Source of the DNA: Pristiophorus japonicus
Taxonomy: Eukaryota
Assembly (NCBI RefSeq): GCF_044704955.1
Contig: NC_091999.1
Location: forward strand, 50,406,001 to 50,470,000
Direction of reading: 5' to 3'
DNA: 64,000 nucleotides
The notes below the pieces were generated by a model. That model ran no database searches and was not told the DNA's origin. It saw nothing but the letters and a program-made list of their open reading frames with translations. The position numbers were made by a program, and so were the translations under genes. Below are positions 26,446-60,991 of this stretch, piece by piece (within the stretch, counting starts at the first letter, position 1; each line of letters opens with the position of its first letter).

Positions 26446-26726
26446 ATCGTGTGGTACATCATTCAACCGTTATCCTCATGCTGACGTCCGTGAAGAAATC
26501 ACCAGCAACAAATATGCATCAGCTGTGTGTTCAATCCTCGAATTCCGTCCAAAGAGTGAGACCTTGAATTGGCTGATCACTCATGCATCAGGGCTTCGTC
26601 ACCTCTCCCATCTGTGAAGTGAACTGAAACTTCTCGGTGCCCAGTCGGCTGACATTGCCAAGGTTTCTACCTACCAGGTCTCTCATCAAGGGTTCAGACA
26701 AAGCCGAAACTTTGCCAGATCTCACG
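26446..26726 (+). pseudogene. IGHM: IgM heavy chain Cmu2 exon, pseudogenised
   Basis: Reads VVHHSTVILMLTS/fs/EEITSNKYASAVCSILEFRPKSETLNWL../MHQGFVTSPICEVN*NFSVPSRLTLP../VSTYQVSHQGFRQSRNF. This matches shark Cmu2 as recalled (PTVILT..SEEITS..ATVLCSIIDFHP..WL..GFVTSPTC.VNG.FSATSRLTV..YTCQVSHQG..QSRNI). Acceptor is CAG>CAC, donor GT>AT, with a stop and deletions. Confidence 0.9.
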
Positions 26727-27031
26727 ATAATGGAGACCAGCCCGTGGAGTCCCAAATCATTATGAGCGCGGATGTCAATCAGAGCTTTTATTCGAATTAG
26801 TAAACAGCACAGAACTTTTTTCATTGACAAACGTACAGCTTGGACTTCCTTTCGTTGTACGTCCTAATTTAAGTTCCCTCATGGTTCAGAATTCCATAAC
26901 CTCGTCAAAGGTTTCCCTGAGCGGTGATGTCGGATAGTGAGTGAGGTGTCCTTAGTCTGAGGTTTATGCTGAGAAAGCTCTATTTCTAATATACAATCGT
27001 GCTGTTTATGGTTTCTTCCATTATAATATAA

Positions 27032-27450
27032 AAGAAAGAAATGCCATGGCCGAACTCCAGTTGTCCTAAAGTGCTTCACCACCAAGGAAGTTCTTCTTGA
27101 ATTGTGGTCACTGTTTTACTGTAGAAATCGCGTCGGCCAATGTTCAGACAGTAAGGTCCCACGAACAGCAATGTGATAATGACCAGATAATCTTTTTGTT
27201 TAGTGCTGTTTGTTGAGTCGTAAGTATTGTCCAGGACAACTGGGAGAAATGCCCTGCTCATCTTCGAAATAACCCCAAGGGATATTTTCCATCCAATTCA
27301 AAGGGCAGATGGGGCCTTGGTTTCCTATCTCATCCGAAATATGGTACTCCCACAATGCAGCGCTACCTCAGTATTGCACTGGGAGTAGCAGCTTACATTT
27401 TTTGTTCAAGAATGTGGAGTGCGACTTGAACCCACAATCTTCTGATTCGG
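27032..27450 (-). mobile_element. DeuSINE
   Basis: Reverse-strand paralog of 10723-11170. Confidence 0.8.
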
Positions 27451-27489
27451 GATTCCTCATGGTTCAGGATTTAATAACCTCGCAAGATG

Positions 27490-27625
27490 TTCGCCCTGAC
27501 GAAGGGTCATCGACCTCAAACGTTAACTATTTTGTATCTCCACAGATGCTGCCTGACCCGCTGAGATTTCCAGTATTTTCTGTTTTTTTTTCAGATTGCA
27601 GCATCTGCAGTATTTTGCTCTTGCT
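27490..27625 (+). mobile_element. Penelope-like 3' end with degenerate hammerhead core
   Basis: CTGACGA-AGGGTCATCGACCT-CAAA-CGTT-AACT followed by CTCCACAGATGCTGCCTGACC. Confidence 0.6.
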
Positions 27626-27759
27626 TTCCCTCTGCTCTAATTTCAGATAATATGTCTGCTGCCCTTGGTCTCAGGTTTATACTGAGATGGAGCGACAGGC
27701 GGTGTTGGAACCCTTTGCTGGTAACTGTCTCAGGACCCACTGCTAGAAAGGGCGCCTGC

Positions 27760-28221
27760 CCTATTTAGAACATTGTGTTCAATTCCGTGCACCGCGCTGC
27801 AGGATGGATATACCGGCTTTGGAACGGGTGCAATGCAAATTCACCCGAATCATACCGGGGCTAAAATGGTTAAATAATGCGGACAGGTAGCACAGAATAG
27901 GCTTGTATTACTTTGCATTTTGAAGGTAAAGAGGTGATATAAGTTGTTTAACTTGATAAACGGAATTGTTAGGGTAGAGAGAAAATATTTCCTTGGTGCG
28001 GGATTGAGAACAAGGGGCAGAAACCCAAAATTCGAGCGAGCCCATTGAGGAGTGAGGTCAGGAAGGATTCTTTCACACAAATGATAATAGTAATCTGGAA
28101 ATCTCTCCCCCAACAGCTGTTGAGGCGGAGGATCAATTGAAAATGTCAAAACTGAGATTGATACATCTTTGTTAGGCAAGGGGTTACACAAATGAGGCGG
28201 ATAGATGATATTGAGGTATAG
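27760..28221 (+). mobile_element. Old CR1 3' fragment, host of the Gypsy insertion (continues at 32622-32690)
   Basis: LEHCVQF.. and FFTQ..IWKSLPQ. The 3'UTR resumes after the LTR element (..AATTGAATGGAGGAACAGGCTTGA..). Confidence 0.75.
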
Positions 28222-28430
28222 TATTGTGTTCCTAACACAGATGAGACTTCAGAGGAAGGTTAAAGTAACAGTGACCTCAGTCTTTATTAAGACAATCCAG
28301 AGTGAGTAACAGACCTTCGGGGCCAGCTTATATACAGTGCTCTCAAGGGATGCTGGGATCCCTTGGGTCTTCTGGGGATGCGCTCCCTGGTGGCGGAACA
28401 TGGGAGTGCATGCTTTACAGATGCACAGCA
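28222..28430 (-). repeat. 3' LTR of the Gypsy element
   Basis: Direct repeat of 32411-32621, adjacent to the PPT. Confidence 0.93.
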
Positions 28431-31400
28431 TCACTCCCCCTCAAAGTCAAAGTGAAAACTATTTACAAGGTGAGGCGGTCGGGAGCCTTTCTTTCCCTGG
28501 TGCACGGCCTTGATACAAATGTCGGTTCTGGTGTGTTGGCTGCACCCTCGCTGGGCTGGTGTGTTGTTGGCCCTGCAGAGCTGCTGGGTGAGCCTGGCCT
28601 TGCTGGGCTGTTGGGCGTGATGGGTTCGATTTCCTGGTCCGGCGTGGTGTTGTTGATCCTTTTGGTGTGTGTTATGCGCTCGAAAAATGTGGTGTCTGTT
28701 GTGGGTTGTTCAGGGCAGTCTATGAACCACAGCCTCGTGTGGTCCAAGTGCTTCTGCAAATTTGTCCATTGGCTAGTTTGAGTACAAACATCCTACTCCC
28801 TTCTTTAGCTATCACCCTGCCCGCGATCCACTTCGGACCATGTCCATAGTTTAGTACATACACAGGGTCATTCAGATCAATTTCCCCTGACACAGTGGCG
28901 CGACCATCGTTTACATTTTGTTGCTGCCGCCTGCTCTCTACCTGGTCATGCAGGTTGTGGAGAACCAGTGAGAGTCTGGTTTTAAGTGTCCTTTTCATGA
29001 ATAGCTCAGCCGGGGGAACCCCTGTGAGTGAGTGGGGTCACGTGCAGTAGCTGAGCAGCACTCGGGACAGGCGGGTTTCGAGTAAGCCTTCTGTAACTTG
29101 TTTGAGGCTCTGTTTGATTGTTTGTACTGCCCGCTCTGCCTGCTCATTGGAGGATGGTTCAAACGGGGCAGAGGTGACATGTTTGATCCCATTGCGGGTC
29201 ATGAATTCTTTAAATTCGGCACTGGTGAAACATGGCCCGTTGTCACTGACCAGTATGTCAGGCTGGCCGTGGGCGGCAAACATGGCCCTCAGGCTTTCAA
29301 TGATGGCGGTGGCGGTGCTTCCCGACATTATTTCACATTCAATCCATTTTGAAAAATCATCCACCACCACCAGGAACATTATACCGAGAAACGGGCCCGC
29401 ATAGTCGACATGGATCCTCGATCATGGTCTGGAGGGCCAGGACTACAAATTTAGTGGTGCCTCTCTGGGCGTGTTGCTCAACTGAGCACGCATGCTGCAT
29501 TGGCATACACAAGACTTCAAGTCAGAGTCGATACCGGGCCACCACACGTGGGATCTGGCTATCGCTTTCATCATTACTTTACCCGGTGGTGTGCTTTGGA
29601 GATCCGAGATGAACGTCTCCCTGCCCGTTTTGGGTAGCACTAGGCGGTTACTGCACAACAGGCAGTCTGCCTGAATGGACAGCTTGTCCTTTCACCGCTG
29701 GAACGGCTTGATTAGCTTTTGCATTTCAACGGGTTTGCTGGCCCAGCTCGTATGCAGTACACAGTTTTTTACTCGGGACAAAAGGGGTTCTTGGCTGATC
29801 CAAGTCCGAATCTGGTGGTCCGTGATCGGTGATTTATCATTTTCAAAAGCTTCCATGCCCATCAACAAGTCTGCGGGCTGCGCCACCGTCAATAAGTTTG
29901 CAGGCTGCGCCATTTACACCCCCATGGTGGGCAATGGTAGCCAACTGAGAACAACTGCACAGTTATCGGTGCCTGGCCTGTGGCGGATGGTATAGTTATA
30001 CGCTGATAGTGCGAGTGCCCACCTTTGTATGCGGGATGAGACATTAGTATTTATCCCCTTGTTTTCAGTGAACAGGGATATGAGGGGCTTGTGATCGGTT
30101 TCTAGCTCAAATATGAGGCCAAACAGGTACTGACGCATTTTCTTTACCCCGAACACACACGTTAATGCGTTTTTATCAATCATTCTGTAGGCCCTCTCGG
30201 CCTTAGACAAGCTCCTGGAGGCATAGGCGACAGGTTGCAACTTCTCCGCATTGTTAGCTTGTTGTAATACACACTCGACTCTGTACGACGACGCATCACA
30301 TGCTAGCACAAGTCTTTTACATGGGTTATGCAATACAAGCAGCTTGATGGAGCATAAAATATTTCTGGCTTTCTCAAAAGCAATACTTGTTTTTTTCCCC
30401 ATAACCAGTTCTCACCTTTAGGCAATAACACATGTAGGTGCTCTAAGAGGATGCTTAACCCCGGTAGGAAGTAATCAAAATAGTTAAGGAGTCCCAGGTA
30501 CGACCGCAGCTGAAGGACCTCCTCCAAGTTTTGTAGGTGCTCGATGGTGTCCCGACCTGTGACCAATATGTCGTCCTGAAAAACCACCGTGCGGGGTACT
30601 GACTTGAGTAGGCTCTCCGTGTTTCTCTGGAAGATCGCTGCAGCCGACCGAGTTCCAAATGGGTATCTGTAGTAGATGAACAATCCTTTTGCATGTTGAT
30701 GCAGGTGAGGCCATTCGAAGACACCTCCAGCTCTTGCATCATGTAGGCCGAAGTTAGGTCGAGCTTGGCCAACATCTTGCCTCCTGCCAGCGTCGCAAAT
30801 ACGTCATCTGCCTTAGGTAGTGGGTATTTGTCCTGTAGAGAGAAACGATTAATAGTTACTTTATAATCGCCACAAATCCAGACCGTGCCATCACTTTTGA
30901 GTACTGAAACAATCGGGCTGGCCCACTCGCTGAATTCTACTGGGGAGATCATGCCCTCGCGTTGCAGCTGTCCAGCTCGATTTCCACTCTGTCCCTCATC
31001 ATGTGCAGTACCTCTCGCGCCTTGTGGTGAAAGGGTCGTGCCTCTGGGACCAAGTGGCACCTTCGCCCGGAAATGTTTCCAATGCCTGGCTCAAAAAGGA
31101 AGGACAGTTTTGAAGAACCTGTGATAGCGCTCGGAAGTCATCCCAGTTCCGGCGGATTTTGCCCAGTCAGCTCCTTCCAAGCAGTGTGGGTCATCCCCCG
31201 GGACAAACCAGAGTGGCAGTTCATGCACCGTGCCCTCGTAGGTGACGTTGACCATGGCGCTGCCCAGGACAGTGATAAGCTATTTGGTGCAAGTTATCTG
31301 TTTCGTGTGGATGGGGATTAGGGATGGTCTGAGTGCCTTGTTGCACCACAGTCTCTGAAACATCTTTTTACTCAAGGTAGATTGGCTAGCGCCAGTGTCC

Positions 31401-32410
31401 AGTTCAATGGCTACGGGTAAGCAATTCTATTTTATATTTAGCATTATAGGTGGACATTTCATCAAAAATGTGTGAACCCAGTGTATTTCACCATCTGCCT
31501 CCTCTCCCTGAGGCTCGAAATAGCTTTGATCCACCATGGGCCGATCTTCCTCTGCCACGTGGTGGTTAGCACGTTTTGCCGAGCTTGCAGCTCATCTGCA
31601 AGCTCGTTGGAGGAGCTCCATTGTTCCACAGCTCTTGCAACCATACCCTTTGGAGCGGCATGAATAGGCTGAATGGAAGCCTCCACAAAGCCGTCAAGGT
31701 GGAATTGCCTTGCATTAATCCTTTAGCTCTGAGTCATCTGGGTCACCTGAGGCCTTCTGGCAGTTGCAGACTCGTGGGTTCTGCCCTGTACATTTCTGCT
31801 CGAAAACACAGTTCCAGTTAATTTATGAACATTGCTAGCACTTGTGTACTGAGAGATTTGTTTGCTGTTTTCACTGGTGGACATAAACGCCTGTGCTATC
31901 GCAGTGGCCTTAATGAGTGTAGGTGTCTCTACAGTCAAAATTTTCATAGGATGGTCTCGTGTCCAATACCCAGTACAAAAAATCTGAGCATTTGCTCCAG
32001 GTAGCCATTAAACTTACATTGTCCTGCAAGTTACCTTAGCTCAGCGACGCAGCTCGCCAATTCCTGACCTTCAGATCGCTGGCACATGTAGAACCGATAC
32101 CTCGCCATCAACACGCTCTCCCTCAGGTTAAGATGCTCGCAAACCAGTGTACAGTGCTCCTCATATGACATATCTGTGGGTTTCACCAGAGCCAGAAGAA
32201 ACTTCATGAGGCTGTAGGTCGGTGCCCCGCACACCATGAGGAGCACCGCTCTCTTTTTTCCATTGCTTCCTTCTCCATCCAGCTCGTTGGCTACAAAGTA
32301 CTGGTCTAGCCGTGCGACATCCACTTCCCAGTCCTCACCATCCGAGAAATTCTCCAGGATGCCCACAGTTTGGTGCATCTTTGCGTTGGATTCGTATACT
32401 CGTCGCCAGT

Positions 32411-32621
32411 TATTGTGTTCCAAACACAGATGAGACTGCACACAGGGAGGTTAAATTAACAGTGACCTCAGTCTTTATTAAGACACTCCAGAATGATTAA
32501 CAGGCCTTAAAGGCCGGCTTATATACAGTGCTCTCAAGGGATGCTGGGATCCCTTGGGACTTCAGGGAATGCGCTGCGAGGTGTCGGAACATGGGAATGC
32601 ATGCTATACAGATACACAACA
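32411..32621 (-). repeat. 5' LTR of the Gypsy element
   Basis: Direct repeat of 28222-28430, adjacent to the PBS. Confidence 0.93.
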
Positions 32622-33352
32622 TGCAGGTCATCCAAGAACTAATTGAATGGAGGAACAGGCTTGATGGACTGAAATTCATATTTCCTTCTGACACTCTTTA
32701 ACAAGGCATGATAAAGGCTCACTAATGATAGAAATGAAAAAACTACTTCACACCAACATTACAAATGATTCCCAAACACAAAAGACCCCTTGGAATGCCA
32801 TTCTCCCGACTTTTCTCCTTGGATGGGGGCTGCAAGTGCTGCTTGTACATTTTCATCGCCCCAAAAATCACAAGACACCAGGATATTAACTGTATTTCGT
32901 TTCGATTCTAAAATCCTGAGTTGGATTTGTTATTCGTTTTGAGCCAGTGTAAGTTTCGTGTTGAGCTCTTGAACCTGGGGCAGAGTCATTTTTAAAACGG
33001 TGATAACGTTTGGGCACAAGGATCTTTAGTCGGGCGTAATGGAACAAGGGTTTTCGGGAGGAGCGCTATTCAATTCGTAACACTATTGTGCATGAATGTA
33101 TTTAATGTTTTACGCCGGGTATTTGCTTCACAGCACATTACAGGTGGCTCTGGATGTAAACACACAGAAAATTTGAAAGATTCTCCCGGGCACGTTGCCA
33201 ATCTGTTGTCCTTCCAATAACGATTTGTTTAAGCGACAGCGAGTGCTTGATATCTCAAAGGTGATTTATTCTTCTTGGGGGAATGAAGGGTGCATGCTGT
33301 TACCCTGATTGTGAAGATGAAGCTTGGCTTGATTTATATTTCTGCTTCACAG

Positions 33353-33642
33353 AATATATCCAATGCAGAAATCACTCTTCTGCAACCGTAAGTAGAACAG
33401 GTCTTACTTGAGACATTATCCTGTGTCGTGTCTAATGGTCCTTATGGAATCAAAATATCCAGGACTCGAGAAAAGGAAACTTGGAAATCAAAGATTGCCG
33501 TCGAAGTCGGCGAAGCTCCCAACAGTGTGATCAGCAACATAAACATCTCGAAACAAACCTGGCTAAGCGGTGTTGAGTTCTGCTCCGTGATGAGGCACCA
33601 TTATTATAGCGACTATAAGAGATTCCATCCACAAGGAAAAGG
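33353..33642 (+). pseudogene. IGHM: IgM heavy chain Cmu3 exon, pseudogenised
   Basis: After TTCACAG reads [75 protein letters not shown]/fs/IRDSIHKEK. Shark Cmu3 as recalled: [41 protein letters not shown]. Has a stop, a frameshift and a GT>AT donor. Confidence 0.92.
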
Positions 33643-34128: not shown

Positions 34129-34520
34129 CTAAAGATCCGCGGGAACCGGCCGTGTCTGTCCTCCTGCCCTCGGCAGAAGAAGTCTCCGTTCAAACTTTCT
34201 TTACCTTCAACTGCTTAATGAGAGGTTTCTCCCCCCAAGAGATCTTCGTCAAATGGACCATCAATGACAAGCCGATAGATTCCGGCAACAACAAGAACAC
34301 CGAGGTGATGGCGGAGAACGGCAGCAGCTCCTTCTTCATCTACAGCCTGCTATCCATTGCAGCCGAGGAGTGGGCCAACGGCGTTTCTTACTCCTGTGTG
34401 ATGAGACATGAAGCGATCCCCTTCAAGATCAACAACAAAACCGTTAATAAGTCCAGTGGTAAACTGACTTTTGTGAACATTTCATTAAAGCTGGTAGATA
34501 CGGTGAATTCTTGTCAATGA
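34129..34520 (+). pseudogene. IGHM: IgM heavy chain Cmu4 exon plus secretory tailpiece (open frame, in a disrupted gene)
   Basis: TTCTGCAG acceptor, then [84 protein letters not shown]|[19 protein letters not shown]. Internal donor G|GTAAA at 34459. The tailpiece keeps the NIS sequon and the penultimate Cys. Confidence 0.96.
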
Positions 34521-34548: not shown

Positions 34549-34554
34549 AATAAA
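34549..34554 (+). terminator. Polyadenylation signal for secreted mu
   Basis: AATAAA starting 29 nt after the tailpiece stop. Confidence 0.7.
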
Positions 34555-34974: not shown

Positions 34975-35295
34975 CACACCAGAAAGAGAGGACAGGGAAT
35001 GTTTAACCCACTGTACCTTCAACTCGCCAGCAGAGAGAGGGGAAAGGATAATGGTTAACACCCTGTACCTCACACTCAACCACCAGAGATAGGGGAAGGA
35101 CAATCGTTAACCCAATGTACCTCACACTCAACCACCAGAGAGAGGGGAAAGGACAAGTGTTAATCCAATGTACCTCACAATCAACCACCAGAGGGAGGGG
35201 AATGGACAATTGTTAACCCAATGTACCTCAAACTCAACCACCAGAGAGATGGGAAAGGACAATTGTTAACCCAAAGTACCTCACACGCCCACCAT
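34975..35295. repeat. ~58-bp minisatellite (5-6 units) in the Cmu4-TM intron
   Basis: Unit GGAAAGGACAATTGTTAACCCAATGTACCTCACACTCAACCACCAGAGAGA. Confidence 0.9.
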
Positions 35296-35889
35296 CCGCC
35301 CCCCGTCCCTACCGCAGAGAGGGGAAGTCAACCGATCTCTATTCTGTGAACTCAGTAGCAACCAGTAAAATGATAGATTTCAACTCGCTGTCAGAAAACG
35401 TTAAACTTGCCGAATATGCATCATATTGTATAATAAATTTTGTTCAACATTTTAGCTTTAACTAGTATTTGGCTAAATCTATATCAGTTATTCGTAAACT
35501 AACTGATTGAATTTTAATAGTCAAAATGTAAACTAGTTATTCAATCCTCTGCAGGTTTTTCATGGTTATCTCCAAGATAGGTCCGAGGCCCATCGTTGAA
35601 TTGTTGAAATCCATCAACTGACATCGCATTGCGTCTCACACGGAAACACTTTTACATAGAGCTGGCGAGAATGCCTGTAAACGTGCGTGTGTGTCTTTAT
35701 GTGAACGTGTGTTCGTTGTTGTGTGTAAATTTGCGTGGTTTTGTGTAAGTGCACACTTCCATACAAACACACTCAGACTTACAAATAAACAAACAATCTT
35801 CATACTAACACAGAATAATATAGGTATCCAGAATATAATGCACACTGTTATTGTCACACTCGGTTAGTGGTACTCTCTGAAACTTTGAG

Positions 35890-36340
35890 TAAACATACAC
35901 AGTCTTACACAAAGTACACAAACACACGCATTAACACACAGATTTACACACGCATAACCACACATATCAACACAAACACACATACACAAATCACACACAC
36001 AGATACACACGCAGTTACACTCAAACTCACACAGTTACACATAAAAACACAAACATAGACCTCAACATACAAAAACGCTTACATATCCACATAAGGTACA
36101 TGCACATTGCTACACATAACACGCACACTTATATATGTAAATACACTTATACAAAAACACACAAAGACTTACATATAAACATACACACACTTACATAAAC
36201 ACTCGCACAATTATATATAACACACACAGTTACATATTAACATAAACATTAAAACACAAACACAGGGAAAACGAAAACAAGAGATCATGATCCACACATA
36301 TGCAAACAGTAAAGCGCACAAAACACATCAGGATATAAAC
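35890..36340. repeat. CA-rich low-complexity tract
   Basis: Degenerate (CA)n/(CATA)n. Confidence 0.85.
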
Positions 36341-36923
36341 ATATGTGGAATTCAATGCACTTTTTATATAGGCACAGCATGGAACGATTGCACTGAATAA
36401 AAAATTCCTGAAAACATAATTCTCACTTTCTCAATTCCAACACTGAATCCATGTTCTTGTTGGAAACTGATACAAGTTAATTATGTTCAGAACACAGCCA
36501 TAACAAGTAAATAAACAATATTATAACTCACAACTGATCACTTACCTTGTCTCCTTGACAGTCTCCAAATAAGTAGCTATCTAAACCTATCGTTAAATTA
36601 TCGATATCAATCAGTAAACCTCCCTCGATCTTACATTATACTATTCCCGAATGGTAGAATGTAGAAAATTGATGCAAGATCAATTGAAGGCAACATTCAT
36701 ATTTTCCAACAAGGACTATAAGAGGATCATAAAGGAAGAATGACTGTGGAGGTAGGAACAGAGATAGATGGCCGAGAGTGATTAACATAACACAAGGTAT
36801 ATATTGACAATTAAATTAGAGAACAAAATAATAATTCATGGAAAAGAAAAGAGAATATATGATCACATGATATCTTGGTTACATAAGCGATCTCGATATA
36901 TTTCTATCTCTTCATCCCCGTAG

Positions 36924-37051
36924 ATTCCTCAGACCACATCTCGAGTGAAGACTATGAGGATGAGTGCGACAACATCTGGACAACCGCTTCCACATTCATC
37001 ATCCTGTTCTTCCTGAGAATTTCCTACAGCGCTGCCGTCACTCTGATGAAA
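36924..37051 (+). pseudogene. IGHM: IgM transmembrane exon TM1
   Basis: CCCCGTAG acceptor, then DSSDHISSEDYEDECDNIWTTASTFIILFFLRISYSAAVTLMK (antigen-receptor TM motif). The donor reads GC rather than GT. Confidence 0.93.
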
Positions 37052-37189
37052 GCGAGAAGATTCAATCCATTTACATCGATCTGTTTGAAGCGGTTTGACA
37101 AATCTCTGGATGTTTCATTGATAAAAACCTTGCGATAAATGCCCCATACCACTAGATCTTCACTTCACTCTTTAATACCTCTTTTACAG

Positions 37190-37198
37190 GTCAACTGA
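37190..37198 (+). pseudogene. IGHM: IgM cytoplasmic exon TM2 (coding part)
   Basis: CTTTTACAG|GTC AAC TGA gives V-N-stop, so the tail is KVN instead of KVK. Candidate AATAAA signals lie at 37261, 37644 and 37843. Confidence 0.8.
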
Positions 37199-37929
37199 AC
37201 GGTTGAATTTCGGATGCCGTGGATTTTCCTCTCTGTTTATTAACAACTCTGTGTCCTGAAAATAAATATGTCCATCGTGATTCTCAGAGTAAAATGTTTC
37301 AATTAATAGTTCCGAATCTCTAGCTGAGAATATCATAACCGGGATTTCCATCTTTCTGTTTGAAATGTGTGAGATAATCGTGGCCATAATGTAAATATAT
37401 CTCAGAGTTTCACCGTTTTTTGAATATTTCTTGGGGAAATAAGTCACTTTTCTAGTTCCTAATTCTCAATTATTCCCTTCCTTTTATGTTGATCCCTTAT
37501 TTTCTCTCCCAGATGCCTGTTTCATTTGTACAGATAGCCGGCCAGCTCAGACCACCGGTGTTGTGGTCTCAATGTGCTGTTATATTCACTTTATGCTACA
37601 TTTTTGAAAAACTTCTCTACAAATTGTTCTTTGCGAAATTGTTAATAAATCTGGAATGGCGATTGGACTAAGTTGGAAATGTTGTTGAATTCCTTTCTAG
37701 GAGGCTCATCCGCACCGTTGCATATCCCATTACACTTTGTTTTATTTCCCTGACTGATATTTTTTACAGATCCTGTTTTGGTTTTGTTTCAATCCAAGTC
37801 CCTTCGGTTAAGGAGCCACTGTGCCACCCAGTTTCCCATCAGAATAAAGACACCTTTATCTCTGCATTTGTAAGTCAAGTCCCAGAGTGCAATTGACAGC
37901 ACAGCGACAACGCAGTACCTCTAACATTA

Positions 37930-39260
37930 TGGTCTGTCACAGTCATATGTCAGGTTCTATTAAAGAGCAAGGGGAGAGGAAGAAGAATGGAAGAGCTGTA
38001 GTGGTTGGGGCTTCAATAGTCAGGGAAGCAGACAATCAGTTCTGCGGCCGCAGCTGTGACTCCAGGATGGTATGTTGCCTCACTGCAGCTCGGGTCAAGG
38101 ATGTCACCGAACGGTTGCAGGGCTTTCTGGGTGGAGGAGGATGAACAGCCAGAGGTCCTGATCCGTATCGGGACAAACGTCATGGGTAGTAAGAGGGATG
38201 AGGTTCTGCAGGCAGAATTTAGGGAGCTAGGAGACAGATTAAAAAGCAAGACCTCAAAACTAGTAATCTCCAGATTAATCCAGTTGTCAAGAGCTAGTGA
38301 GTACGGAAATAGGAGAATAGAGCAGGTAGATGTGTGACTGATTGAAATAGTACAAGAGGGAGGGCTTTCGAATCCTGAAGCATTGGAACCGCTTCTGGTG
38401 GAGGTGTGACCTGTACAAGCCAGAACGGGTTTCACCTCAACAGAGCCGGACCAATATCCACGCGGGTTGGTCGGGTGGGGTTGCGGGGGTTGAGAGGGGT
38501 TGATCGTGCTGTTGCGGAGGGTTTAGATTATCTTGGCTTGGGAATAGGAACAGGAGAATAGATTCTCTTTGAAGGGGAATTAATAATGGAGCGCAGGGAA
38601 ATGGCAGAGACGTTGAACAAATATTTTGTACCGGTATTCACGGTAGAAAACCCCAAAAACATCCCAATAGTGGATAATCAAGGGGCTATAGGTAGCGAGG
38701 AACTTAATCCAATCACTATCACTAATGAAGTAGTATTAGGTAAAATAATGGGACTAAAGTTGGACAAGTCTCCTGGACCTGATGCATTATATCTTAGGAT
38801 CTTTAGAGAAGTGGCTGCAGAGATAGTAGATGCATTTGTTGTAATCTACCAAAATTCCCTGGATTCTGGGGTGGTCCCATCAGATTGGAAAACCACAAAT
38901 GTAATGCGACTATTTCAAAAATCAGGCAGCTACAAATTAGGAAACTAGACCAGTTAGCCAAATATCTGTCATTGTGAAAATGCTGGAGTCCATTATTAAG
39001 GAAGCAGTAGCGGGACATTTGGAAAGCAGGATCCAATCAAGAAGAGTCTGCATGTTTTTATGAAAGGGAAATCACGTTTGGAAAATTTGCTGGAGTGGGT
39101 AACGAGCAGGGTGGATAAAGGATAATCATTAGATGTGTTGTATTTGGATTTCCAGAAGGCATTCGATAATGTACCACATAAGTGGTTACTGCACAAATTA
39201 AAAGCTCACCTGGTTGTGTAATATATTACCATTGATTGAAGATTGACTAACTAACAGAGC
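37930..39260 (+). mobile_element. CR1 fragments: ORF1 esterase region, then ORF2 RT region after an internal deletion
   Basis: AVVVGASIVR..FCGRSCDSRMVCCL..ARVKDV, then KSPGPDALYLRIFREVAAEIVD and YLDFQKAFD. Confidence 0.9.
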
Positions 39261-40733
39261 AAACCATACAATAGCCAAGAGATCAGGAGAAATGAAAGGT
39301 GGAAGGAACATAGTTATGATTATACATTCTGGGGAGGGTTTCTTGGCAAGATATGCAGTTACTGTTGAAGAAGCTGGTAATGAGCAAGGGAATTGCAGCT
39401 GCAAAAATCCCCAACCACCTTTAAAGCTGGAGTAGCAGGAAGAGCTGCATCTGAGTTTCCTGTGGGCGGCTGGGCATGTGAGCCGCTCCTACGCCCGGAT
39501 GAAACGTGCTGCAATAAGCACTGAAACACCGCCTACTTTTCAAAAGCATCTGTTTGACGGACATTCCACCATTTGTTTCTGACAAACAGTTGGCCATATA
39601 TGTTTGATGTGCTGTCGGCCGTGTTAGTATGACGTAGCTATGTTTCTGTGACGTCTCATTACATGAACTTATGTTTCTTTACAACCATTTAAATAAAACA
39701 TGACTTAAATTCCCACAAAGGAAACAATTTTACTTTTTCAATAAAAACTAGCAAATAGGCGACAGAAATAAAGATACAGGCAGCCACGATTAAAGTGTTT
39801 GACAGGTTTGAGCCACAATGCCCTTCACACTACCCAGATGCTTTGTCGTTTGGCGAGTAGCACATGTGCGAACAGTCCTCCCATAGAGCACCGCGGCCCG
39901 GGGACCACATTGAGCCTTTTTTGGCCGCTTTGCATTGTGAAAGCTCTGTTATTCACGACTCCTTAAATCATTGAAAGGATGTGAGCTAAAGGAACCAGTG
40001 AATGCCAATTTATTCAAGCCCCCATAAGGCAATCAGAGCTCTCCGTATGAGCTAATAGCACTTGGTCAGATGTATTTCAGGTTAATCAAAGCATGGAAGT
40101 TATATTATTGAGTCAGAGACCGGAAAGTAAGAAGAGCAAATTGTACAAAAATCTTTATTTTCCCCAGAGTCCCCGAAACATACAACTATTTTCTATTTCA
40201 TATCCTCCCTCATTCGGTTGAGTGATTGCAAGACAACTGTTTTCAAGTTTGGAAAGTTACAGCTGTCTTTAGGTGAAATTTAAAGAAAGTAATGGGCCGG
40301 AGCCTTCCACGAGCAGAACAACACGATAAATATCCAGCTTTAAAGGAATACACGGGATGAAATCACCCACAGAGGCAGAATATAGGAACTAGAACCTTTC
40401 CTATTAAGTAAGCGACAAGCTGACCTTGGAGCTCCTGGAGCTGATCTGAACATCCATCCATCAAGTCAAGGGAAAACAGCTGATCAGAAGCAGAAAGGAC
40501 AGTTTAGAAGTCAGTTCATTCGATGGTGGTCGATTCACAGGTCGATTTTCGGACCGATTGAATAATGCAACTTGTTTTCGCGGCCGCTCCTGGAATCATT
40601 TGGCTGACAATTGGATCCGAGGTTAATTTGGTATATTCTCTGTGTGTCTGAGCGCCTGACAGCGCGCTGCACACTGTGGCTGCATCTGCCCGCGATTCCA
40701 ACAGGCAGGAGCTCCGCCGAACAGGCCAATGGC

Positions 40734-40772
40734 AGTTTTTGTACGGTGGTGATGTTGCTTTCCATCTCTGCA
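40734..40772 (-). other. 23-spacer RSS of V1 (degenerate heptamer)
   Basis: TGCAGAG + 23 nt + ACAAAAACT. Confidence 0.8.
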
Positions 40773-47800: not shown

Positions 47801-48455
47801 TCCAGGAAATCCTCCTCCACCGTATTGCTTCCAGTTTGGTTAGCCAAATCTATGTGCATATTAAAGTCACCTATTATAACTGCAGCACCTTCATAGCATG
47901 CACTCGTAATTTCCTGTTTGATGCCCTCCCCAACATCACTACTACTGTTTGGAGGTCTGTACACAACTCCCACTAACTTTTATTGCCCTTTAGTGTTCTG
48001 CAGCTCTACCCATATAGATTCCACATCATCTAAGCTAATGTCTTTCCTAACTATTGCATTAATCTCCTCTTTAAACAGCAATGCTACCCCACCTCCTTTT
48101 CCTTTTATTCTATCCTTCCTGAATGTTGAATACCCCTGGATGTTGAGTTCCCAGCCCTGATCATCCTGGAGCCACGTCTCCGTAATCCCAATCAGATCAT
48201 ATTTGTTAACATCTATTTGCACAGTTAATTCATCCAGCTTATTGCGGATACTCCTTGCATTAAGACACAAAGCCTTCAGGCTTGCTTTTTTAACACCCTT
48301 TGTCCTTTTAGAATTTTGCTGTAAAGTTGCCCTTTTTGTTCTTTGCCTTGGGTTTCTCTGCCCTCCACTTTTCCTCATCTCCTTTCTGTCTTTTGCTTTT
48401 GCCTCATTTTTGTCTCCCTCTGTGTACCTGCATAGGTTCCCATCCCCCTGCAATA

Positions 48456-49403
48456 TTAGTTTAACTCCTCCCCAACAGCACTAGCAAACACTCCCCCTTG
48501 GACATTGGTTCCGGTCCTGCCCAGATGCAGACCGTCCGGTTTGTACTGGTCCCACCTCCCCCAGAACCGGTTCCAATGCCCCAGGAATTTGAATCCCTCC
48601 CTGCTGCACCACTGCTCAAGCCATGTATTCATCTGCTCTATCCTGCGATTCCTACTCTGACTAGCACGTGGCACTGGTAGAAATCCCGAGATTACTAATT
48701 TTGAGGTCCTACTTTTTAATTTAGCTCCTAGCTCCTTAAAATCTTCTCGTAGGACCTCATCCCTTTTTTTACCTATGTCGTTGGTACCAATGTGCACAGC
48801 GACAACTGGCTGTTCTCCCTCCCACTTCAGAATGTCCTGCACCCGCTCCGAGACATCCTTGACCCTTGCACCAGGGAGGCAACATACCATCCTGGAGTCT
48901 CGGTTGCGGCCGCAGAAACGCCTATCTATTCCCCTCACCATCGAATCCCCTATCACTATCGCGCTCCCAATCATTTTCCTGCCTTCCTGTGCAGCAGAGC
49001 CAGCTACGGTGTCATGAACTTGTCTGCTGCTGCCCTTCCCTGGTGAGTCATCCCCCCGAACAGTACTCAAAGCAGTGTATCTGTTTTGCAGGGGGATGAC
49101 CACAGGGGACCCCTGCACTATCTTTCTTGCACTGCTCTTCCTGCTGGTCTTCCATTCCCTATCTGGCTGTGGACACTTCTCCTGCGGTAAGACCAACTCA
49201 CTACACGTGATACTCACGTCATTCTCAGCATCGTGGATGCTCCAGAGTGAATCCACCCTCAGCTCCAATTCCACAACGCGGATCGTCAAGAGCTCGAGGC
49301 GGATACACTTCCCACACACGTAGCGCCCAGAGACACCGGAAGTGTCCCCGAGTTCCCACATGGTACAGGAGGAGCATATCACGTGACCGAGCTCTCCTGC
49401 CAT
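48456..49403 (-). CDS. CR1 ORF1 protein (CxxC-CxxC finger, coiled coil, SGNH/GDSL esterase domain), intact 315 aa
   Basis: CSSC..CGKC, LELRVDSL heptads, VIGDSMVRG, HIGTND and DGLHL motifs. Confidence 0.9.
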   Translation of the reverse strand: MAGELGHVICSSCTMWELGDTSGVSGRYVCGKCIRLELLTIRVVELELRVDSLWSIHDAENDVSITCSELVLPQEKCPQPDREWKTSRKSSARKIVQGSPVVIPLQNRYTALSTVRGDDSPGKGSSRQVHDTVAGSAAQEGRKMIGSAIVIGDSMVRGIDRRFCGRNRDSRMVCCLPGARVKDVSERVQDILKWEGEQPVVAVHIGTNDIGKKRDEVLREDFKELGAKLKSRTSKLVISGFLPVPRASQSRNRRIEQMNTWLEQWCSREGFKFLGHWNRFWGRWDQYKPDGLHLGRTGTNVQGGVFASAVGEELN

Positions 49404-49587
49404 GTCTTAACCTTAGATACCCTTAAATTGGTAATAACAATGCTAAAGTTCACTTACTGATATAAAAAAGAAAAGAAAATTTACTCACCAATCACTAGCC
49501 AATCACTTACCCCATTGGCTGTGACTTCACTTTTTGATTCCTTTCTACTTCTATTTTGCTTTCTCTCCCGCTGTAGCTGCAGCGGTA

Positions 49588-49879
49588 CGCTGGCTCTCGC
49601 TCTCCCGCTGGGCCTTTATAGGTCGCTCCCCTCTCAACAACTGCCGCTGGCTCTCGATCTCCCGCTGGGCCTTTATAGGTCGCTCCCCTCTCAACAACTG
49701 CCGCTGGCTCTCGATCTCCCGCTGGGCCTTTTATTGGTCGCTCCCCTCTCACCAACTGCTGTTGGCTCTCGACCTCCCGCTGGGCCTTTTATAGGTCGCT
49801 CCCCTCTCAGCAACTGCCGCTGGCTCTCGATCTCCCGCTGGGCTTTTGATAGGTCGCTCCCCTCTCACCAACTGCCGCT
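49588..49879 (-). repeat. ~58-bp tandem monomers (x5) in the CR1 5'UTR
   Basis: Unit GCTGGCTCTCGATCTCCCGCTGGGCCTTTATAGGTCGCTCCCCTCTCAACAACTGCC. Confidence 0.92.
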
Positions 49880-50041
49880 CTGCAGTATCTCCACCAAGCC
49901 CCCCAGTATCTGATCGGAGCCGATAGTTAAGGCATTTGAACACTTCAGCAGGAATCTCAACCGGACACAAAGAACTTTTCACTTATCCATGAAAGGCATT
50001 AAGATCAGAAACAGTGCCGTGTATTACTATGTGCGATGACC

Positions 50042-50080
50042 CACAGTGAATAAGAATCCCTCGGGCCTCATGCATAAACA
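50042..50080 (+). other. 23-spacer RSS of V2
   Basis: CACAGTG + 23 nt + GCATAAACA. Confidence 0.88.
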
Positions 50081-50985: not shown

Positions 50986-51423
50986 ATGTGTTCCCCATGT
51001 TCACTACTGATAATAATTGCCATGCTGCCCGGTGAGTCTATGTTTAAAGGGTCAGTTTGTGCTCCATGGGTTATATTTACTATCAGACTTTTAACACATT
51101 CTGTATTTTGTTCCAGGAAGGAGTGGCGAAGATTCAGTGTCCCAGCATCCGTCTGAAGTAATGATTCAGGAGGGTCAGACCTTAAAACTGAACGGTAATT
51201 ACTCAGCAGCGTACACTGCCCCAATTCTCTTCTGGTATGTCCAGTATCCCGGGGAAGTTCCGAGATATTTACTGAACAGATACGGCAAGGGGAATAGGGA
51301 TCATTCTCCTGATTTCCCAGGACGGTTTTCTGCTGCTTTGGACCAAGACTAGTAAACAGTTCCTTTAAATATATCCGGGGCTCTTGTCTCTGAATCTGCC
51401 GTGCATCACTCTGCGCTGACCCC
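50986..51423 (+). pseudogene. TRAV: TCR V-alpha pseudogene V3: leader 50986-51031, V exon 51117-51423
   Basis: Intact leader MCSPCSLLIIIAMLP G|GTGAG and TTCCAG acceptor. Reads RSGEDSVSQHPSEVMIQEGQTLKLNGNYSAAYTAPILFWYVQYPGEVPRYLL..GRFSAALDQD**TVPLNISGALVSESAVHHSALT, with both Cys lost and two stops. Confidence 0.93.
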
Positions 51424-51462
51424 CACACTGCTACACGGGCGCAGTCAGTCCGTACAAAACAA
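51424..51462 (+). other. 23-spacer RSS of V3
   Basis: CACACTG + 23 nt + ACAAAACAA. Confidence 0.88.
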
Positions 51463-54205: not shown

Positions 54206-54208
<3 letters not shown>

Positions 54209-55384: not shown

Positions 55385-58273
55385 CGGAGAGAGAGAGAAG
55401 CAATGGGAAATCAGATAGAGAAACACTGCGACATTCAGAATTAGAGGGAAAACGATAGGTATTTAGATAGAGAGACACTGAGAGTCAGACAGGGAGAAAA
55501 ACAGGAGTGATCAGATAGAGAGACACGGAGACAGTCAGACAGGGAGAAGATCAGGCGTAGTCAGATAGTAAGACATTGAGGTAATCTGACAATGAGACAG
55601 AAACAGTGGGTGATCATACAGAGAGAAACTGAAACAGTCAGGCACAGACAGTAACAGGGTGTAATCATAGAGCGAGAGACATTGACATAGTCAGACACAC
55701 AGAGAACAGGGACTAATCAGAGAGGGCAACAATGTGACAATCAGACAGAGATAGAGAGAGAGAGGAGTAATCAGATAGAGACACGCTGAGGCAGTTAGAT
55801 TCAGAGAGCCAGTCGCAAATATTAATCAGATAGGGAGACACTGAAATAGCCAGACAGAGAGTGAGAAGCAGGGAGTAATGAGATAGAGATATACTGCGAC
55901 AGTCATACAGAGATAGAAACAAGGGGCAATCATATAGAATCTCACTGAGACACAGTCGGACAGAGAGCGAGAGAGACGCAGGATGTATTCAGGTAGANNN
56001 NNNNNNNNNNNNNNNNNNNNNNNNNNNNNNNNNNNNNNNNNNNNNNNNNNNNNNNNNNNNNNNNNNNNNNNNNNNNNNNNNNNNNNNNNNNNNNNNNNNN
56101 NNNNNNNNNNNNNNNNNNNNNNNNNNNNNNNNNNNNNNNNNNNNNNNNNNNNNNNNNNNNNNNNNNNNNNNNNNNNNNNNNNNNNNNNNNNNNNNNNNNN
56201 NNNNNNNNNNNNNNNNNNNNNNTATACACTGGGAATGGCAGACATAGAAAGAGACTCTGAGATACAGACAGAGAGAGAAAAACGGGTTAATCAGATGGAT
56301 TGTAACTGAGACAGTCAAACAGCGTGAAGCACGGAGTAATCAGTTAGAGAGACTCTGACACTGTGAGCCCGAATGATAAACAGGGATAATCAAATAGAGA
56401 AATACTGAGACAGACAGACACAGAGAGACACAGTAGTAAATTAGATAGGTTTACAGCCAATCATAGAAATATAGAAAATAGTTGCAAGATTAGACCATTC
56501 GGCCCTTCGAGCCTGCACCGCCATTCAATACGATTATGACTGATCATTCCCTCAGTACCCTTTTCCTGCTTTCTATCCATACCCCTTGATCCCCTTAACC
56601 GGAAGGGCCATATCGAACTCCCTGTTGAATATATCCAATGAACTGGCATCAACAACTCTCTGCGGCAGGGAATTCCATCGTTTAATAACTCTCTGAGTGA
56701 AGAAGTTTTTCCTAAATGGCTTACCCGTTATCCTAAGACTACGTCCCCTGGTTCCGGTCTTCCCCAACATTGGGAACATTCTTCCTGCATCTTAGCTGTA
56801 CAGTACCGTCAAAATCTTATACGTTTCTATGAGATCCCCTCCCATCCTCCTAAAGTCCAGTGAATAAAGGCCCAGTTGATCTTGTCTCTTCTCGTATGAC
56901 ATTAATGACAGAAGGAGGCGTTAATTGAATAGAGAAACACCGAGACAGTCAGACACAGATAGAGAGAAACAGGGGTTAATCAGATAGTGAGACAGTGAGT
57001 CAGGCCGAGAGGGAGAAGCAGGTAATATTCAGATAGAGAGATATTTTGACAGAGAGAGAGAGAAAAATGGTCAATCAGAAAGATAGGTACTGTGGTAACA
57101 GACACAGAGAGAGAGAAGGAGGGAGTATTCAGAAAGAAACGCTGAGACTGTCAGACACAGAGAGAAAAACAGATGAATCAAATGGAGTGAAACTGCGACA
57201 GACAGAGATAAAATCAGGGAGTGATCAGATTGTGAGACTCTGAGACAAAAAGACCGGAAGACAAACAGTGTTAATCATACATAGATATACTGAGACAGAC
57301 AGGTAGACAGACGAGCAGCGGTAAATTAGATAGTGACACTGAGAGAATCAGATACTACGAGACAGAACCAGGGGTTAATCGAATAGAGATATTGAGATAA
57401 TCAGACAGAGAGAGGGAGAACAGGGGAAATCAGACAAATACATTTCGCTACAGTCAGGAGGATAGAGAAACAGGAGGTAATCAGATAGAGGCAGTGAGAC
57501 AGTCAGACAGAGAGGGTGAAGCAGGTAATATTCAGATAGAAAGATATTTTGACAGACAGACAGAAAGAGAAACAGGGGATAATGAGAAAGTGAGGTACTG
57601 AGGTAACAGACACACAGAAAGAGAAGGATGGAGTATTTAGATAGGGACACTGATAGTGTCAGACACAAAGAGAAAAACAGATTAATCAAATGGAATGAAA
57701 CGGCACAGTCAGGGAGATAAAATCAGGCACTGATCAGATATGGAGACTCTGAGACAGAAAGACCGAAAGACAAACAACGTTAATCATATAGAGAGATACT
57801 GAGACCGAATTACAGAGAGAGAAACAGGGGTAAATTAGATAGAGTGAGACTCAGACAATCAGATACTACGAGACAGAAGCAGACGTTAATCGAATAGAGA
57901 TACATTGAGACAATCAGGCAGAGAGATAGAGAGAACAGGGGTAATCAGATGAAGAAATTTCGATACAGTCAGGAAGATAGAGAAACAGGGGTAATCAGAT
58001 GGAGACAGTGAGACAGTCAGACAGAAAGGGAGAAGCAGGTATTATTCAGATAGAGATACATTTTGACAGACAGACAGAGAGAGAAATAGGGGTAATCAGA
58101 CAGAAAGAAAGACAGAGGCTGTCAGACAGAGAGATAACAGGAATTCGTCAGGTAGGAAGACAATGAGGCAACAGACAGTGAAAGAGAAATACGGGTAATC
58201 TGATCGATATACACTGATGTAGTCTGAAACAGAGAGATCACAGATGTTAATCAGAAATTGAGACAGACAGACA

Positions 58274-58331
<58 letters not shown>

Positions 58332-58831
58332 GAGAGAGAGTGAGTGAGAGAGAGAGAAGCATGGGGTAAACAGATGGATAGACATTGAAACACATAGACG
58401 GGGAAAGAGAGAGGGGTTAATCAGATAAATAAATACTGGGACAGTCAGAAAGAGAGCAACGTAGGGTAAGCAGATAGAGAGACACTGAGATAATCAGACA
58501 GAGGGAGTGAAACAGGAGGTAATCAGATCGACAGACACTGAGACAGTCAGAGAGAGCGAATGAGATAAGGGGTAATCAGACAGAGAGACAGTGAGAAAGT
58601 CAGGAGTGAAAAAAACAGGGCGTGATCAGATAGATAGACAACGATAATTCAGAAATAGGGAGAAAACAGGGTTTAAACTGATAGAGAGACATTGAGAAAA
58701 TCAGGCACAGGGTAAAGCAGGGCTTATGAGATACTGAGCGAGATAGAGAGATAGAGAGACCGCTATGGAGAGAGACAGAGATAGAAAGAGGTATATAGAT
58801 AGAGAGATACAGGTATAGATTTAGAGAGAGG

Positions 58832-58921
<90 letters not shown>

Positions 58922-59130
58922 GGGGATAGATAAAGCATAAGACAGACACAGGGATAAAGAGATACAGAGTGATTCAGAGAAACAGAGAGAAAGAGAAAGG
59001 GAGAGCGAGAGTTGAAGGGAGAGATAGAGAGAAAGTCAGACTGTCAGAGATACAGATATGTATAGACATATATATATATATAGAGAGATACAAATTATAC
59101 AGAGGTAAAGAAATCGAGAGAGATAAAGTG
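55385..59130. repeat. Purine-rich degenerate ~46-bp satellite grading into (GA)n
   Basis: Unit GGGTAATCAGATAGAGAGACACTGAGACAGTCAGACAGAGAGAGAAACA repeated dozens of times. Confidence 0.9.
56462..56900 (-). mobile_element. CR1 3' fragment inserted in the satellite
   Basis: CATAGAAA tail and MFPMLGK..NFFTQRV..WNSLPQ. Confidence 0.9.
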
Positions 59131-60019
59131 AGACTGTAAGGGGATAAAATACCATCACTAAAGTGGGAGTGGACAGACGGACAGATGGTCACTAAAGTGG
59201 CTACTGAAGGTAGTGAATTGATCTAACACATGGTCTAGATTGTAGGCCTTATCAGTATTAGGAGGTTCTGAGGAATCAGGAGTTCCTCTGTCTTACGGTA
59301 GGGATTATAATATATATTAAATTGACCGGTTGTATGAAAAACTCACTTATGTATGTACAGCACGCTTATACTCTCGCTTTTTATGGGTTTTCAGTCGCGG
59401 AAACAGCAAATTGTGCTTCACAATAAAGACTGAGGGAAACATACATTCAGTACAGAATAACACATCCATCAAAGTCAGTGGAGAATTAACAGTTTGAAAC
59501 AAGATTGGACAGCCTCTCAATCTCATGAGATTCTTAAGGGAACTCGAACATTTTCACTAGAATTCTCTTGGGAACAGGATAAGAAAGTATGTATTTGGGA
59601 ACAAGATAGCAAATCCTGGGAAGCAATTTCAATTCACACTTCATGAGGAATTGAGGCAAATTTGACACCACAGAATAACACATTCCAGAAGAGTGACATG
59701 TGATGCAAGATGGAGAGGTGGGGAAGCACTACTCAGAGCCAGTCTGACAAGGGTCGACACATCAATGTAAGTTCGTTGATAGCAGTATGCCAATCGATAT
59801 TTTTTTTAAGACGGGCGCACACCTCTAAAATTGTAGAAGTGTGTTTGCAAAACCTCTGTTCTGGGAAGGTCCATCCATGAAAACTTCCCCTGCATGCTTG
59901 AATACAAACCAGTTGAAACGAAGTTTCGTCTGAGTGATTCTGTGGTCGCTATACGGGCGGGTAGGTGTCGATTCCTTACATCAGGGAGTCCACCTTGAGT
60001 AAGAGAAGTTTTCCTTCTA

Positions 60020-60256
60020 CAGCAACAGAGACAATGATACAAAGAGGTTGAGAGATACAGCGATTGAGCAAGCGGTACAGGGAGCGAGAAAAAGAGATAA
60101 AGAAAGAGAGAGCGAGAAAGATACATAGATAGATAGACTGATACAGAGATACAGAGAGAGATAGAGAGATGGAAAGAGAGAGATAGAGAGAGAAAGAGAA
60201 AGGTACATAGATAGAGAGACTGATACAGAGATAATGAGAGACAGAGAGCAATGTAA

Positions 60257-60289
<33 letters not shown>

Positions 60290-60290
60290 T
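60020..60290. repeat. GA-rich low-complexity tract
   Basis: Seen directly in the sequence. Confidence 0.85.
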
Positions 60291-60497
60291 TCATGATTGT
60301 GCTTCTTGATAAAGATCTTCACTCCAAACTCAGTATCATGATTTCAATCCTGTCTTCTGACGCTGATTCGTCCTGTTTTTTTGAATGGACAATGAAAGGT
60401 TGACAATGTTATAAAACCCATCAGCACCTGTCAGTATGTGCTAGAAGCTTTGTTTTCCACTTATGGTTTGCAGAGATCTGTTCCCGAGGTGCCATTC

Positions 60498-60991
60498 AGG
60501 TATTTGTTTCCAGTTGCTCTCCTGTTTACACTGAGGGTAGGCTTTGCGCAATGCATTGAGCTGTGTGTATGTGTTACTGGCATTTATGAAATTGCAAGTG
60601 TGGGTCCAGCCTCCATTGCTTGAGTGTTGTTTATTCTGATAACATGATGCCTTTTACTTGCTTATGTTCCTTATCAAGTCCAGTGAGGAAATAGTGTCCG
60701 TGTTTCAGGACCCACCGAGTAACACCTTGGGTGACGGGCAAAGTTTCACTTTGAAGTGTAATTATGCGACATCACCTCCTCACCCTTCATTTTTTCTCAT
60801 GCATTCAGCAGCCAGAGGCAAATCCGCAATAAATACTGCAAAGCTCGATCTGGAAATAATGTAACTGCCTTTGGGAAGTGTCTGCTGTAGTTACATTAGA
60901 CAATGCCATAGGAACGGTTCCTTTAAACATTCAATATTGCCAGGTGTCTGACAGCGTCATTTATTACTGTTCACTTGCTCTGTGCACAATG
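60498..60991 (+). pseudogene. TRAV: TCR V-alpha/delta pseudogene V4: probable leader 60498-60536, V exon ~60677-60984, heptamer 60985-60991
   Basis: SSEEIVSVFQDPPSNTLGDGQSFTLKCNYATSPPHPS/fs/..IQQPEANPQ*IL../VTLDNAIGTVPLNIQYCQVSDSVIYYCSLAL, then CACAATG with no nonamer. The leader-like (R)YLFPVALLFTL|GTAGG lacks an ATG. Confidence 0.85.

Follow-up and report, generated by a model that had tools for sequence, protein, structure and literature searches.

A non-functional IgM constant-region remnant beside TCR-type V pseudogenes in the shark Pristiophorus japonicus

A 64,000-nucleotide stretch of Pristiophorus japonicus contig NC_091999.1 (RefSeq assembly GCF_044704955.1, forward-strand positions 50,406,001 to 50,470,000; 'the window', with coordinates counted from its first letter) holds at 26446-60991 what is left of the constant region of an immunoglobulin M (IgM) gene and, 3′ of it, four variable (V) segments resembling, with differing clarity, those of T-cell receptor (TCR) alpha and delta chains. 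With a probability of roughly 85%, the two together are a non-functional relic unit within the large antigen-receptor complex (AgRC) of elasmobranchs. As an object this is a decayed relic of a kind of arrangement that has already been published. Its anatomy, its lesions and the family assignments are matters of direct observation. To judge from the lesions alone, nothing in the unit would be capable of rearrangement to a working chain or of coding for one.

The shark IgM minicluster has the layout V-D-D-J-Cmu1-4-TM1-TM2 (D, diversity; J, joining; Cmu, mu constant domain; TM, transmembrane), and non-functional clusters are known in horn and nurse sharks. The remnant resembles such a minicluster in the order and orientation of its parts from Cmu2 to TM2, in its tailpiece, in the splice donor for membrane exons inside its last domain exon, and in having two TM exons with a poly(A) signal of their own. 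It differs in that the window is without V, D, J and Cmu1 of the cluster, in that Cmu2 and Cmu3 are disabled and in the presence of a retrotransposon in the intron between them. The IgM exons, all on the forward strand, were searched for singly, and were read from stop-to-stop translation and from the DNA itself.

Cmu4 with its secretory tailpiece (34129-34520) matches the Pfam C1-set domain at E 1.9e-17. Behind a ttctgcag acceptor its frame is open over 130 codons to a stop at 34518-34520, with a poly(A) signal, AATAAA, ~30 nt further on (34549-34554) and the internal donor for TM splicing, GGTAAA, at 34458-34463. Residues 13-136 align with human IgM Cmu4, tailpiece included, and identity to shark IgM fragments, one of them from Chiloscyllium punctatum, is 66-78%. 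The secretory tail that follows the domain is of mu type, both the N-glycosylation site and the penultimate Cys being kept. The Cmu3 pseudo-exon (33353-33641), found by tblastn with residues 6-88 of shark IgM fragment P0001 (44.6% identity, E 4e-18; proteins gathered in the analysis are cited by P number), has 45-50% identity to shark Cmu3 sequences. An in-frame TAA (33389-33391) stands where its relatives carry Pro, three codons are deleted ahead of the first Cys, Arg takes the place of the conserved Trp, the second Cys has shifted position and the donor GT is disrupted, the DNA there reading ggatgag in place of ggtgag.

The probable Cmu2 pseudo-exon, at ~26446-26800, contains a piece, ASAVCSILEFRPKSETLNWL, that resembles the B-C strands of a C1-set domain and is followed by stops and a frameshift. 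Pfam gives no match to this piece; in the Protein Data Bank (PDB) the piece has matches at E 0.04-1, mainly Ig constant domains, and with a small local C1-set profile it ranks third across the whole window (E ~0.1). At the other end, TM1 (36924-37051), which encodes NIWTTASTFIILFFLRISYSAAVTLMK, has a match at E 1.3e-6 to the transmembrane stretch of membrane IgM from human, with an Arg within the membrane span; its expected donor GT reads GC (37052-37053). TM2 is a micro-exon (37190-37198) encoding Val-Asn-stop, called from its position and a ttttacag acceptor, with an AATAAA 3′ of it at 37261-37266. What makes the remnant an IGHM gene is the C-terminal C1-set domain with a mu tailpiece, together with membrane exons for which the splice donor sits within the last CH exon. 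Of the four ordered CH exons of such a gene, Cmu1 was not found, Cmu2 is marginal, and Cmu3 and Cmu4 are there. What deprives it of function are the stops and frameshift of Cmu2, the TAA, Trp to Arg replacement and broken donor of Cmu3, and the GC at the TM1 donor.

The V segments, four and no more in the window by tblastn and V profile, sit 3.5-24 kb 3′ of the IgM remnant. All four are pseudogenes, none combining an open frame with Cys23, Trp41 and Cys104. The nearest, V1, is of TCR-delta type and lies on the reverse strand (V at 40775-41069, with the nonamer to 40734; Pfam V-set, E 1.5e-6). It is thus inverted, tail-to-tail with IgM, the end bearing its recombination signal sequence (RSS) facing TM2 across a gap of 3.5 kb. 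It reads GDSVTHQLSSGVKAQGEMV…LSC…YW-stop-HPDTQPTFTLRQYSNGGENNADFAQTRFSAELQTTNKFISLNISGLHPTDAGVYYSALR, the stop being a TAA at the Gln of framework region (FR) 2, and there are also frameshifts and a Cys104 to Ser replacement. Of its RSS, the nonamer ACAAAAACT (8/9) is present at 40742-40734 and the heptamer is degenerate. Unitigs of two sequencing runs, X1 and X3, agree with the V1 sequence except that, at full depth, they have an additional G after 41008. This restores the V1 reading 'GEMVTLSC', so that at this point there is in the window an indel of the assembly or else an allelic deletion of 1 bp. With the extra G one frameshift is gone; the TAA, the second frameshift and the Cys104 to Ser change stay.

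V2, on the forward strand, is in two parts. The 5′ part (45263-45385; FR1, first complementarity-determining region and WYR) has 43% identity to TCR-delta cDNA P0161 (E 2e-7), shows the motifs GDSVSQ, INCSYS and LFWYR, and ends at 45385 in a long interspersed nuclear element (LINE). That element, in reverse orientation, occupies 45386-49895, its junctions having been read in the DNA; Pfam domains RVT_1, Exo_endo_phos and a GDSL-like one are recognized in it, and over its 4.5 kb it comprises an esterase-type (GDSL-type) first open reading frame, an endonuclease, a reverse transcriptase (RT) and 5′ tandem repeats. Beyond it, the 3′ part of V2 (49896-50036, with RSS to 50080), which covers the end of FR2 and FR3 and was recovered by tblastn, V profile and reading of the DNA, runs QAPQYLI…FSRNLNRTQRTFHLSMKGIKIRNSAVYYYVR and has two stops, a frameshift and a Cys104 to Tyr replacement. 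Its 23-RSS is CACAGTG (50042-50048)-23-GCATAAACA, i.e. a heptamer with 7/7 and a nonamer with 6/9 consensus positions, the spacer being exactly 23 bp.

V3 and V4 are also on the forward strand. V3, a match to Pfam V-set, retains a leader exon (50987-51032) that an intron separates from the V exon (51118-51423); in the latter, Cys23 is replaced by Gly, Cys104 by Ser, and a TAG-TAA double stop interrupts the frame. Its 23-RSS, CACACTG-23-ACAAAACAA (51424-51462), has a 6/7 heptamer, a 6/9 nonamer and again a spacer of exactly 23 bp. V4 (60679-60979, with heptamer to 60991), both halves of which match the V profile (E ~1e-5), is disabled by a stop near 60860 along with a frameshift, and no longer has Trp41; a heptamer, CACAATG (6/7, 60985-60991), follows it without a recognizable nonamer. 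Recognizable 23-RSSs are accordingly confined to V2 and V3, where the original prediction had given remnants of them to all four segments; V1 keeps the nonamer only and V4 the heptamer only. The same prediction had described five IgM exons in correct order and orientation, which stands by sequence for Cmu3, Cmu4 with its tail and TM1, but is weak for Cmu2 and a matter of position for TM2. It had placed a V array ~3.6 kb past TM2, and the proximity is borne out at 3.5 kb, though V1 is on the opposite strand. Four TCR-type V genes had been counted and four were found, but all are pseudogenes, V2 is split by a LINE, and V4 lies beyond a gap of unread letters (N) and is only tentatively of this type.

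For the assignment to family, labelled comparison sequences came from rearranged receptors. In P0157, P0159 and P0160 a NAR-type V is followed by a supporting V, a J and then a constant region beginning QKSIVKPKLSAFYPPKSSSKDAVQAAVCLAS, a layout taken here to be the NAR-TCR architecture, a form of TCR-delta (NAR-TCR was reportedly described as such a form by Criscitiello et al. in 2006). The same constant-region start occurs in P0033, P0158 and P0161-P0165, and since they have it in common with the NAR-TCR cDNAs these too were labelled TCR-delta. The whale-shark model P0166 runs on into a C1-set domain and a transmembrane segment of TCR alpha/delta type. V1 has 54-55% identity to the labelled P0164 and P0166 (E 1e-17). 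V3 has 51% identity to the rearranged TCR-delta cDNA P0033 (E 4e-23) and 54% to P0021 over 118 residues. A HMMER search with the V3 piece against 1.84 billion representative proteins gave 459 matches, and its nearest intact relatives have 50-57% identity in pairwise BLASTP; a homologue search by shared words with that piece brought up no candidate. Matches of V4 to labelled cDNAs are weak (best E 6e-3), and among unlabelled sequences it comes closest to V regions of TRAV-like kind, with 45-58% identity over 29-35 residues.

Structures in the PDB are also pertinent. The top matches of V3 are TCR alpha V domains, to E 1e-11; those of the V2 5′ part are weak and nearly all TCR alpha V, and those of V4 are weak and mostly TCR alpha. 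Intact V relatives match TCR alpha and delta V, plus immunoglobulin heavy-chain V (VH). The FR2-FR3 piece of V1 has weak matches to camelid VHH domains, put down to the common WYRQ and RF…DTAVYYC pattern; a VHH-like V1 was set aside because the match to TCR-delta cDNAs is far stronger. By these comparisons, V1 and V3 are firmly assignable to the TCR alpha/delta type, V2 is probably of that type, and V4 is tentatively so.

Nurse-shark TCR-delta V families, including the supporting V of NAR-TCR, reportedly go back for their naming to Criscitiello et al. (2006, 2010). V1 and V3 are like them in being 50-55% identical to V joined to the TCR-delta constant region, and they share the TRAV/TRDV framework motifs GDSVTQ, LFWYRQ, RFSA-L and DSAVYYCA, as well as, in V3, a recognizable 23-RSS. 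The difference is that in the window copies Cys23 or Cys104 is gone and there are stops or frameshifts, so that no contribution to a repertoire is possible. Ten matches of 249-299 residues, scanned with Pfam, are all gene models that fuse two V exons, none being a V-J-C chain. One gene model, GCC19782.1 of Chiloscyllium punctatum (P0009), joins a V3-type V to a V1-type V ('KADFAQTRFS') in one orientation, and the V1 and V3 families therefore adjoin in another shark too. An alignment of eight V fragments by MAFFT misplaced C-terminal pieces on the N-terminal half, and was not used for a profile.

Several points weigh against reading the stretch as a relic unit of the complex. For V4, and to a lesser degree for V2, the similarity behind the assignment to the TCR alpha/delta type is weak. 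The set of labelled V sequences was without shark IGHV, IGLV, TRBV and TRGV, and the assignments are pairwise. The identity of Cmu2 is supported only marginally by its sequence, and TM2 is called only by position, its signals included, the exon being too short for statistics. The place of V4 in the array depends on a scaffold join over the N gap at 55998-56222, and the unitigs that bear on the join between IgM and V1 cross neither a repeat at 37.78-38.10 kb nor a high-copy LINE fragment at 38.58-39.05 kb.

The last two points raise the possibility that the assembly itself has brought the IgM remnant and the V segments together, by a misjoin through repeats (the LINE fragment at 38.0-39.3 kb or the N gap). 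Contiguity was assessed with unitigs from DNA runs of one study; these differ from the window at ~1% of sites and so do not simply repeat the assembly. Three stretches, 36500-37778, 38106-38576 and 39050-41100, are covered by them, the depth being even and single-copy at ~60-67. No unitig spans 37779-38105 or 38577-39049, where word depth rises at least a thousand-fold, and the N gap, which lies within an AG-rich minisatellite field (55.4-60.3 kb) and has no exon or reading frame running across it, does separate V3 from V4. Yet the unique flanks of the repeat have the same single-copy depth in data that differ from the window, and no loose ends or joints were seen in the unitigs outside the repeats. 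The contiguity check that had been proposed for 37.2-40.8 kb thus yields single-copy stretches on either side, with the repeats themselves unbridged. The TM2-V1 join has piecewise support and is neither proven nor contradicted, and a misjoin as the source of the whole juxtaposition is very improbable. Long minisatellite and AG/GAGA-type microsatellite tracts are present at 35000-36400, by the IgM 3′ end, and at 55400-60300, in the V3-V4 interval, and are likely sites of assembly breaks.

A different challenge to a wholly dead unit comes from the state of its 3′ exons. Cmu4 with its tail, TM1 and TM2 might still be in use, for instance in transcripts that are sterile or truncated, or joined to a set of exons far upstream, with selection keeping the frame open. 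The 130 open codons, the intact acceptor and internal TM donor, the N-glycosylation site, the penultimate Cys and the AATAAA are what would be expected of it. However, functional shark sequences are 57-74% identical among themselves in Cmu3 and 69-95% in Cmu4, and the window copies reach 47-50% and 60-78% against them; each of the two window exons thus exceeds, by ~10-20 identity points, the divergence found among the functional shark sequences. With Cmu4 over-diverged much as the disabled Cmu3 is, decay appears uniform and the open frame needs no selection; selection on Cmu4 was rejected on the ground of this equal excess. As a rough estimate, ~1-1.5 stops would be expected in 130 codons at such divergence, and the chance of there being none is ~1 in 4. 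The Arg in the TM1 span, the GC in place of the donor GT and the broken Cmu3 donor also tell against continued use, which is extremely unlikely. In a decaying unit, Cmu4 would still be open merely because no stop has struck yet.

Within the relic unit, the arrangement of the segments finds its closest published context in the elasmobranch AgRC, in which IgM, IgW and IgNAR miniclusters show linkage with TCR alpha/delta (PMC12227049), and TCR alpha/delta-type V exons lie among the immunoglobulin heavy-chain (IgH) clusters (Flajnik et al., Sci Adv 2025, PMC12227049). The species analysed there were white shark, catshark, epaulette shark plus stingray, and pseudogenes were not discussed. The likeness is that V exons of TCR alpha/delta type are found on the same chromosome within a few kb of an IgM minicluster; the differences are that P. 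japonicus is outside those four species and that every element in the window is a pseudogene. That linkage of IgH and TCR alpha/delta in general is not new, as the original prediction also said, is correct, such linkage being already published (PMC12227049).

The more specific proposal had been that a whole IgM minicluster entered the TCR alpha/delta translocon, or co-evolved there, after which the C exons decayed and the VH was left to TCR-delta, on the pattern of the origin of TAILV/VH-delta segments. In its favor, IgM C exons do adjoin TCR alpha/delta-type V segments, and the literature documents both IgH-TCR alpha/delta linkage and the use of VH by TCR-delta in sharks (PMC12227049). TAILV/VH-delta, in the account of PMC12227049 citing Deiss et al. 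2019, are Ig-like V segments used by TCR-delta. The window is like that system in having Ig and TCR-delta segments in one locus. It differs in that its V segments are TCR-type and not VH-like and no VH was found in it; the mixing is the reverse, TCR-type V in IgH territory.

Several observations tell against insertion. The search of the window gave no D, J or C segment of a TCR, none of its four V segments is intact and one of the four is inverted, so the claim of a cluster landing in the TCR alpha/delta locus has no support in it. Nor has that of a decayed cluster leaving its VH behind for TCR-delta: VH, D, JH and Cmu1 were not found in the 26 kb upstream, which are made up of LINE fragments, a tandem duplication with a 5.7 kb period and N runs flanked by microsatellite. 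The searches were by tblastn of the whole window with all 156 proteins gathered by then, by V-domain and C1-set profiles, and by scans for the motifs WGxGT, FGxGT and YYCAR; Cmu1, VH and JH were not found by any of them in the 64-kb window, five upstream N runs being outside the search. No V-like or J-like element was found 5′ of Cmu2 in the readable 26 kb, and an RSS-bearing VH of the decayed cluster was not among what was found there. A D segment was likewise not found in the window, nor any V, C or J element in the 64 kb other than those described. In having no Cmu1, VH or JH upstream, the IgM remnant is truncated at its 5′ end.

The N runs deserve a word here. There are six in the window, and only that at 55998-56222, which is either an assembly gap or a mask, falls within the feature. 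Four of the others (9567-9719, 14091-14371, 19220-19515 and 24900-25178) are spaced ~4.5-5.7 kb apart, with flanks that translate as one low-complexity, microsatellite-like motif, which suggests that the four mark one repeat core in successive copies. The flanks of the run at 15.1-16.0 kb are without such a translation. Concealment of Cmu1 in the run nearest to Cmu2, at 24900-25178, is unlikely, as that run is only 279 letters long and both its flanks are low-complexity and microsatellite-like. The tandem duplication, at 16064-24806, has a period of ~5.7 kb (17.1-19.2 kb against 22.8-24.9 kb, 81-88% identity), and each copy terminates in microsatellite holding an N run.

Taken with these absences, insertion of a single minicluster into the TCR alpha/delta translocon is improbable, and the layout fits the AgRC picture of V exons scattered among IgH miniclusters (PMC12227049), not a single insertion event. 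The relic unit would then probably be one of many copies that arose as IgM clusters and the V segments next to them were duplicated in blocks, and not from one IgM insertion. The minicluster itself reads Cmu2-psi, an old long terminal repeat (LTR) retrotransposon, Cmu3-psi, Cmu4 with its tail, TM1 and TM2; V1 follows tail-to-tail and V2 is broken by a LINE.

The orientation of V1 has its own parallels. An inverted V segment lies 3′ of the constant gene in the human TCR-delta (TRDV3) and TCR-beta (TRBV30) loci. V1 is similarly inverted, 3′ of a constant gene and with its RSS end toward the C exons; it differs in that the constant gene is IgM, not TCR, and in that both partners are dead. It has been considered whether an IgM cluster, an inverted delta-type V ~3.5 kb behind TM2 and then forward V segments might form a conserved duplication unit, its arrangement of C and V being homologous to that of the inverted V behind the TCR-delta and TCR-beta constant genes. 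If true, IgM miniclusters would descend from a TCR-delta-like unit that retained a 3′ inverted V; as things stand, so deep a homology is improbable.

For the broader subject, the relic unit extends to a further shark lineage the record of TCR-type V among IgM clusters, and indicates that such units can be wholly dead. A caution follows for surveys of antigen-receptor loci: to count juxtapositions of IgM and TCR V as mixed loci that function, or to read them as traces of a specific transfer event, overstates the case unless the integrity of each element has been checked. If copies of the IgM/V unit on the chromosome were to share lesions, these could give an age for the block duplications from which the shark field of IgH clusters was built.

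The transposable elements of the stretch have left their mark on both partners. In the Cmu2-Cmu3 intron, a degenerate Ty3/gypsy-like LTR retrotransposon in reverse orientation occupies 28222-32623 (integrase core, E 1e-16; RT RNase H, E 5e-30). Its LTRs (~28222-28433 and ~32411-32623) are ~88% identical, and the ~12% divergence between them makes the insertion an old one. The LINE family responsible for the splitting of V2 is of very high copy number by word depth, with fragments also at 6.5, 17, 20-22.7 and 38-39.3 kb. Its best-preserved copy in the window lies on the reverse strand at 61812-63314, where an RT frame of 501 codons is still open (RVT_1, E 3e-30).

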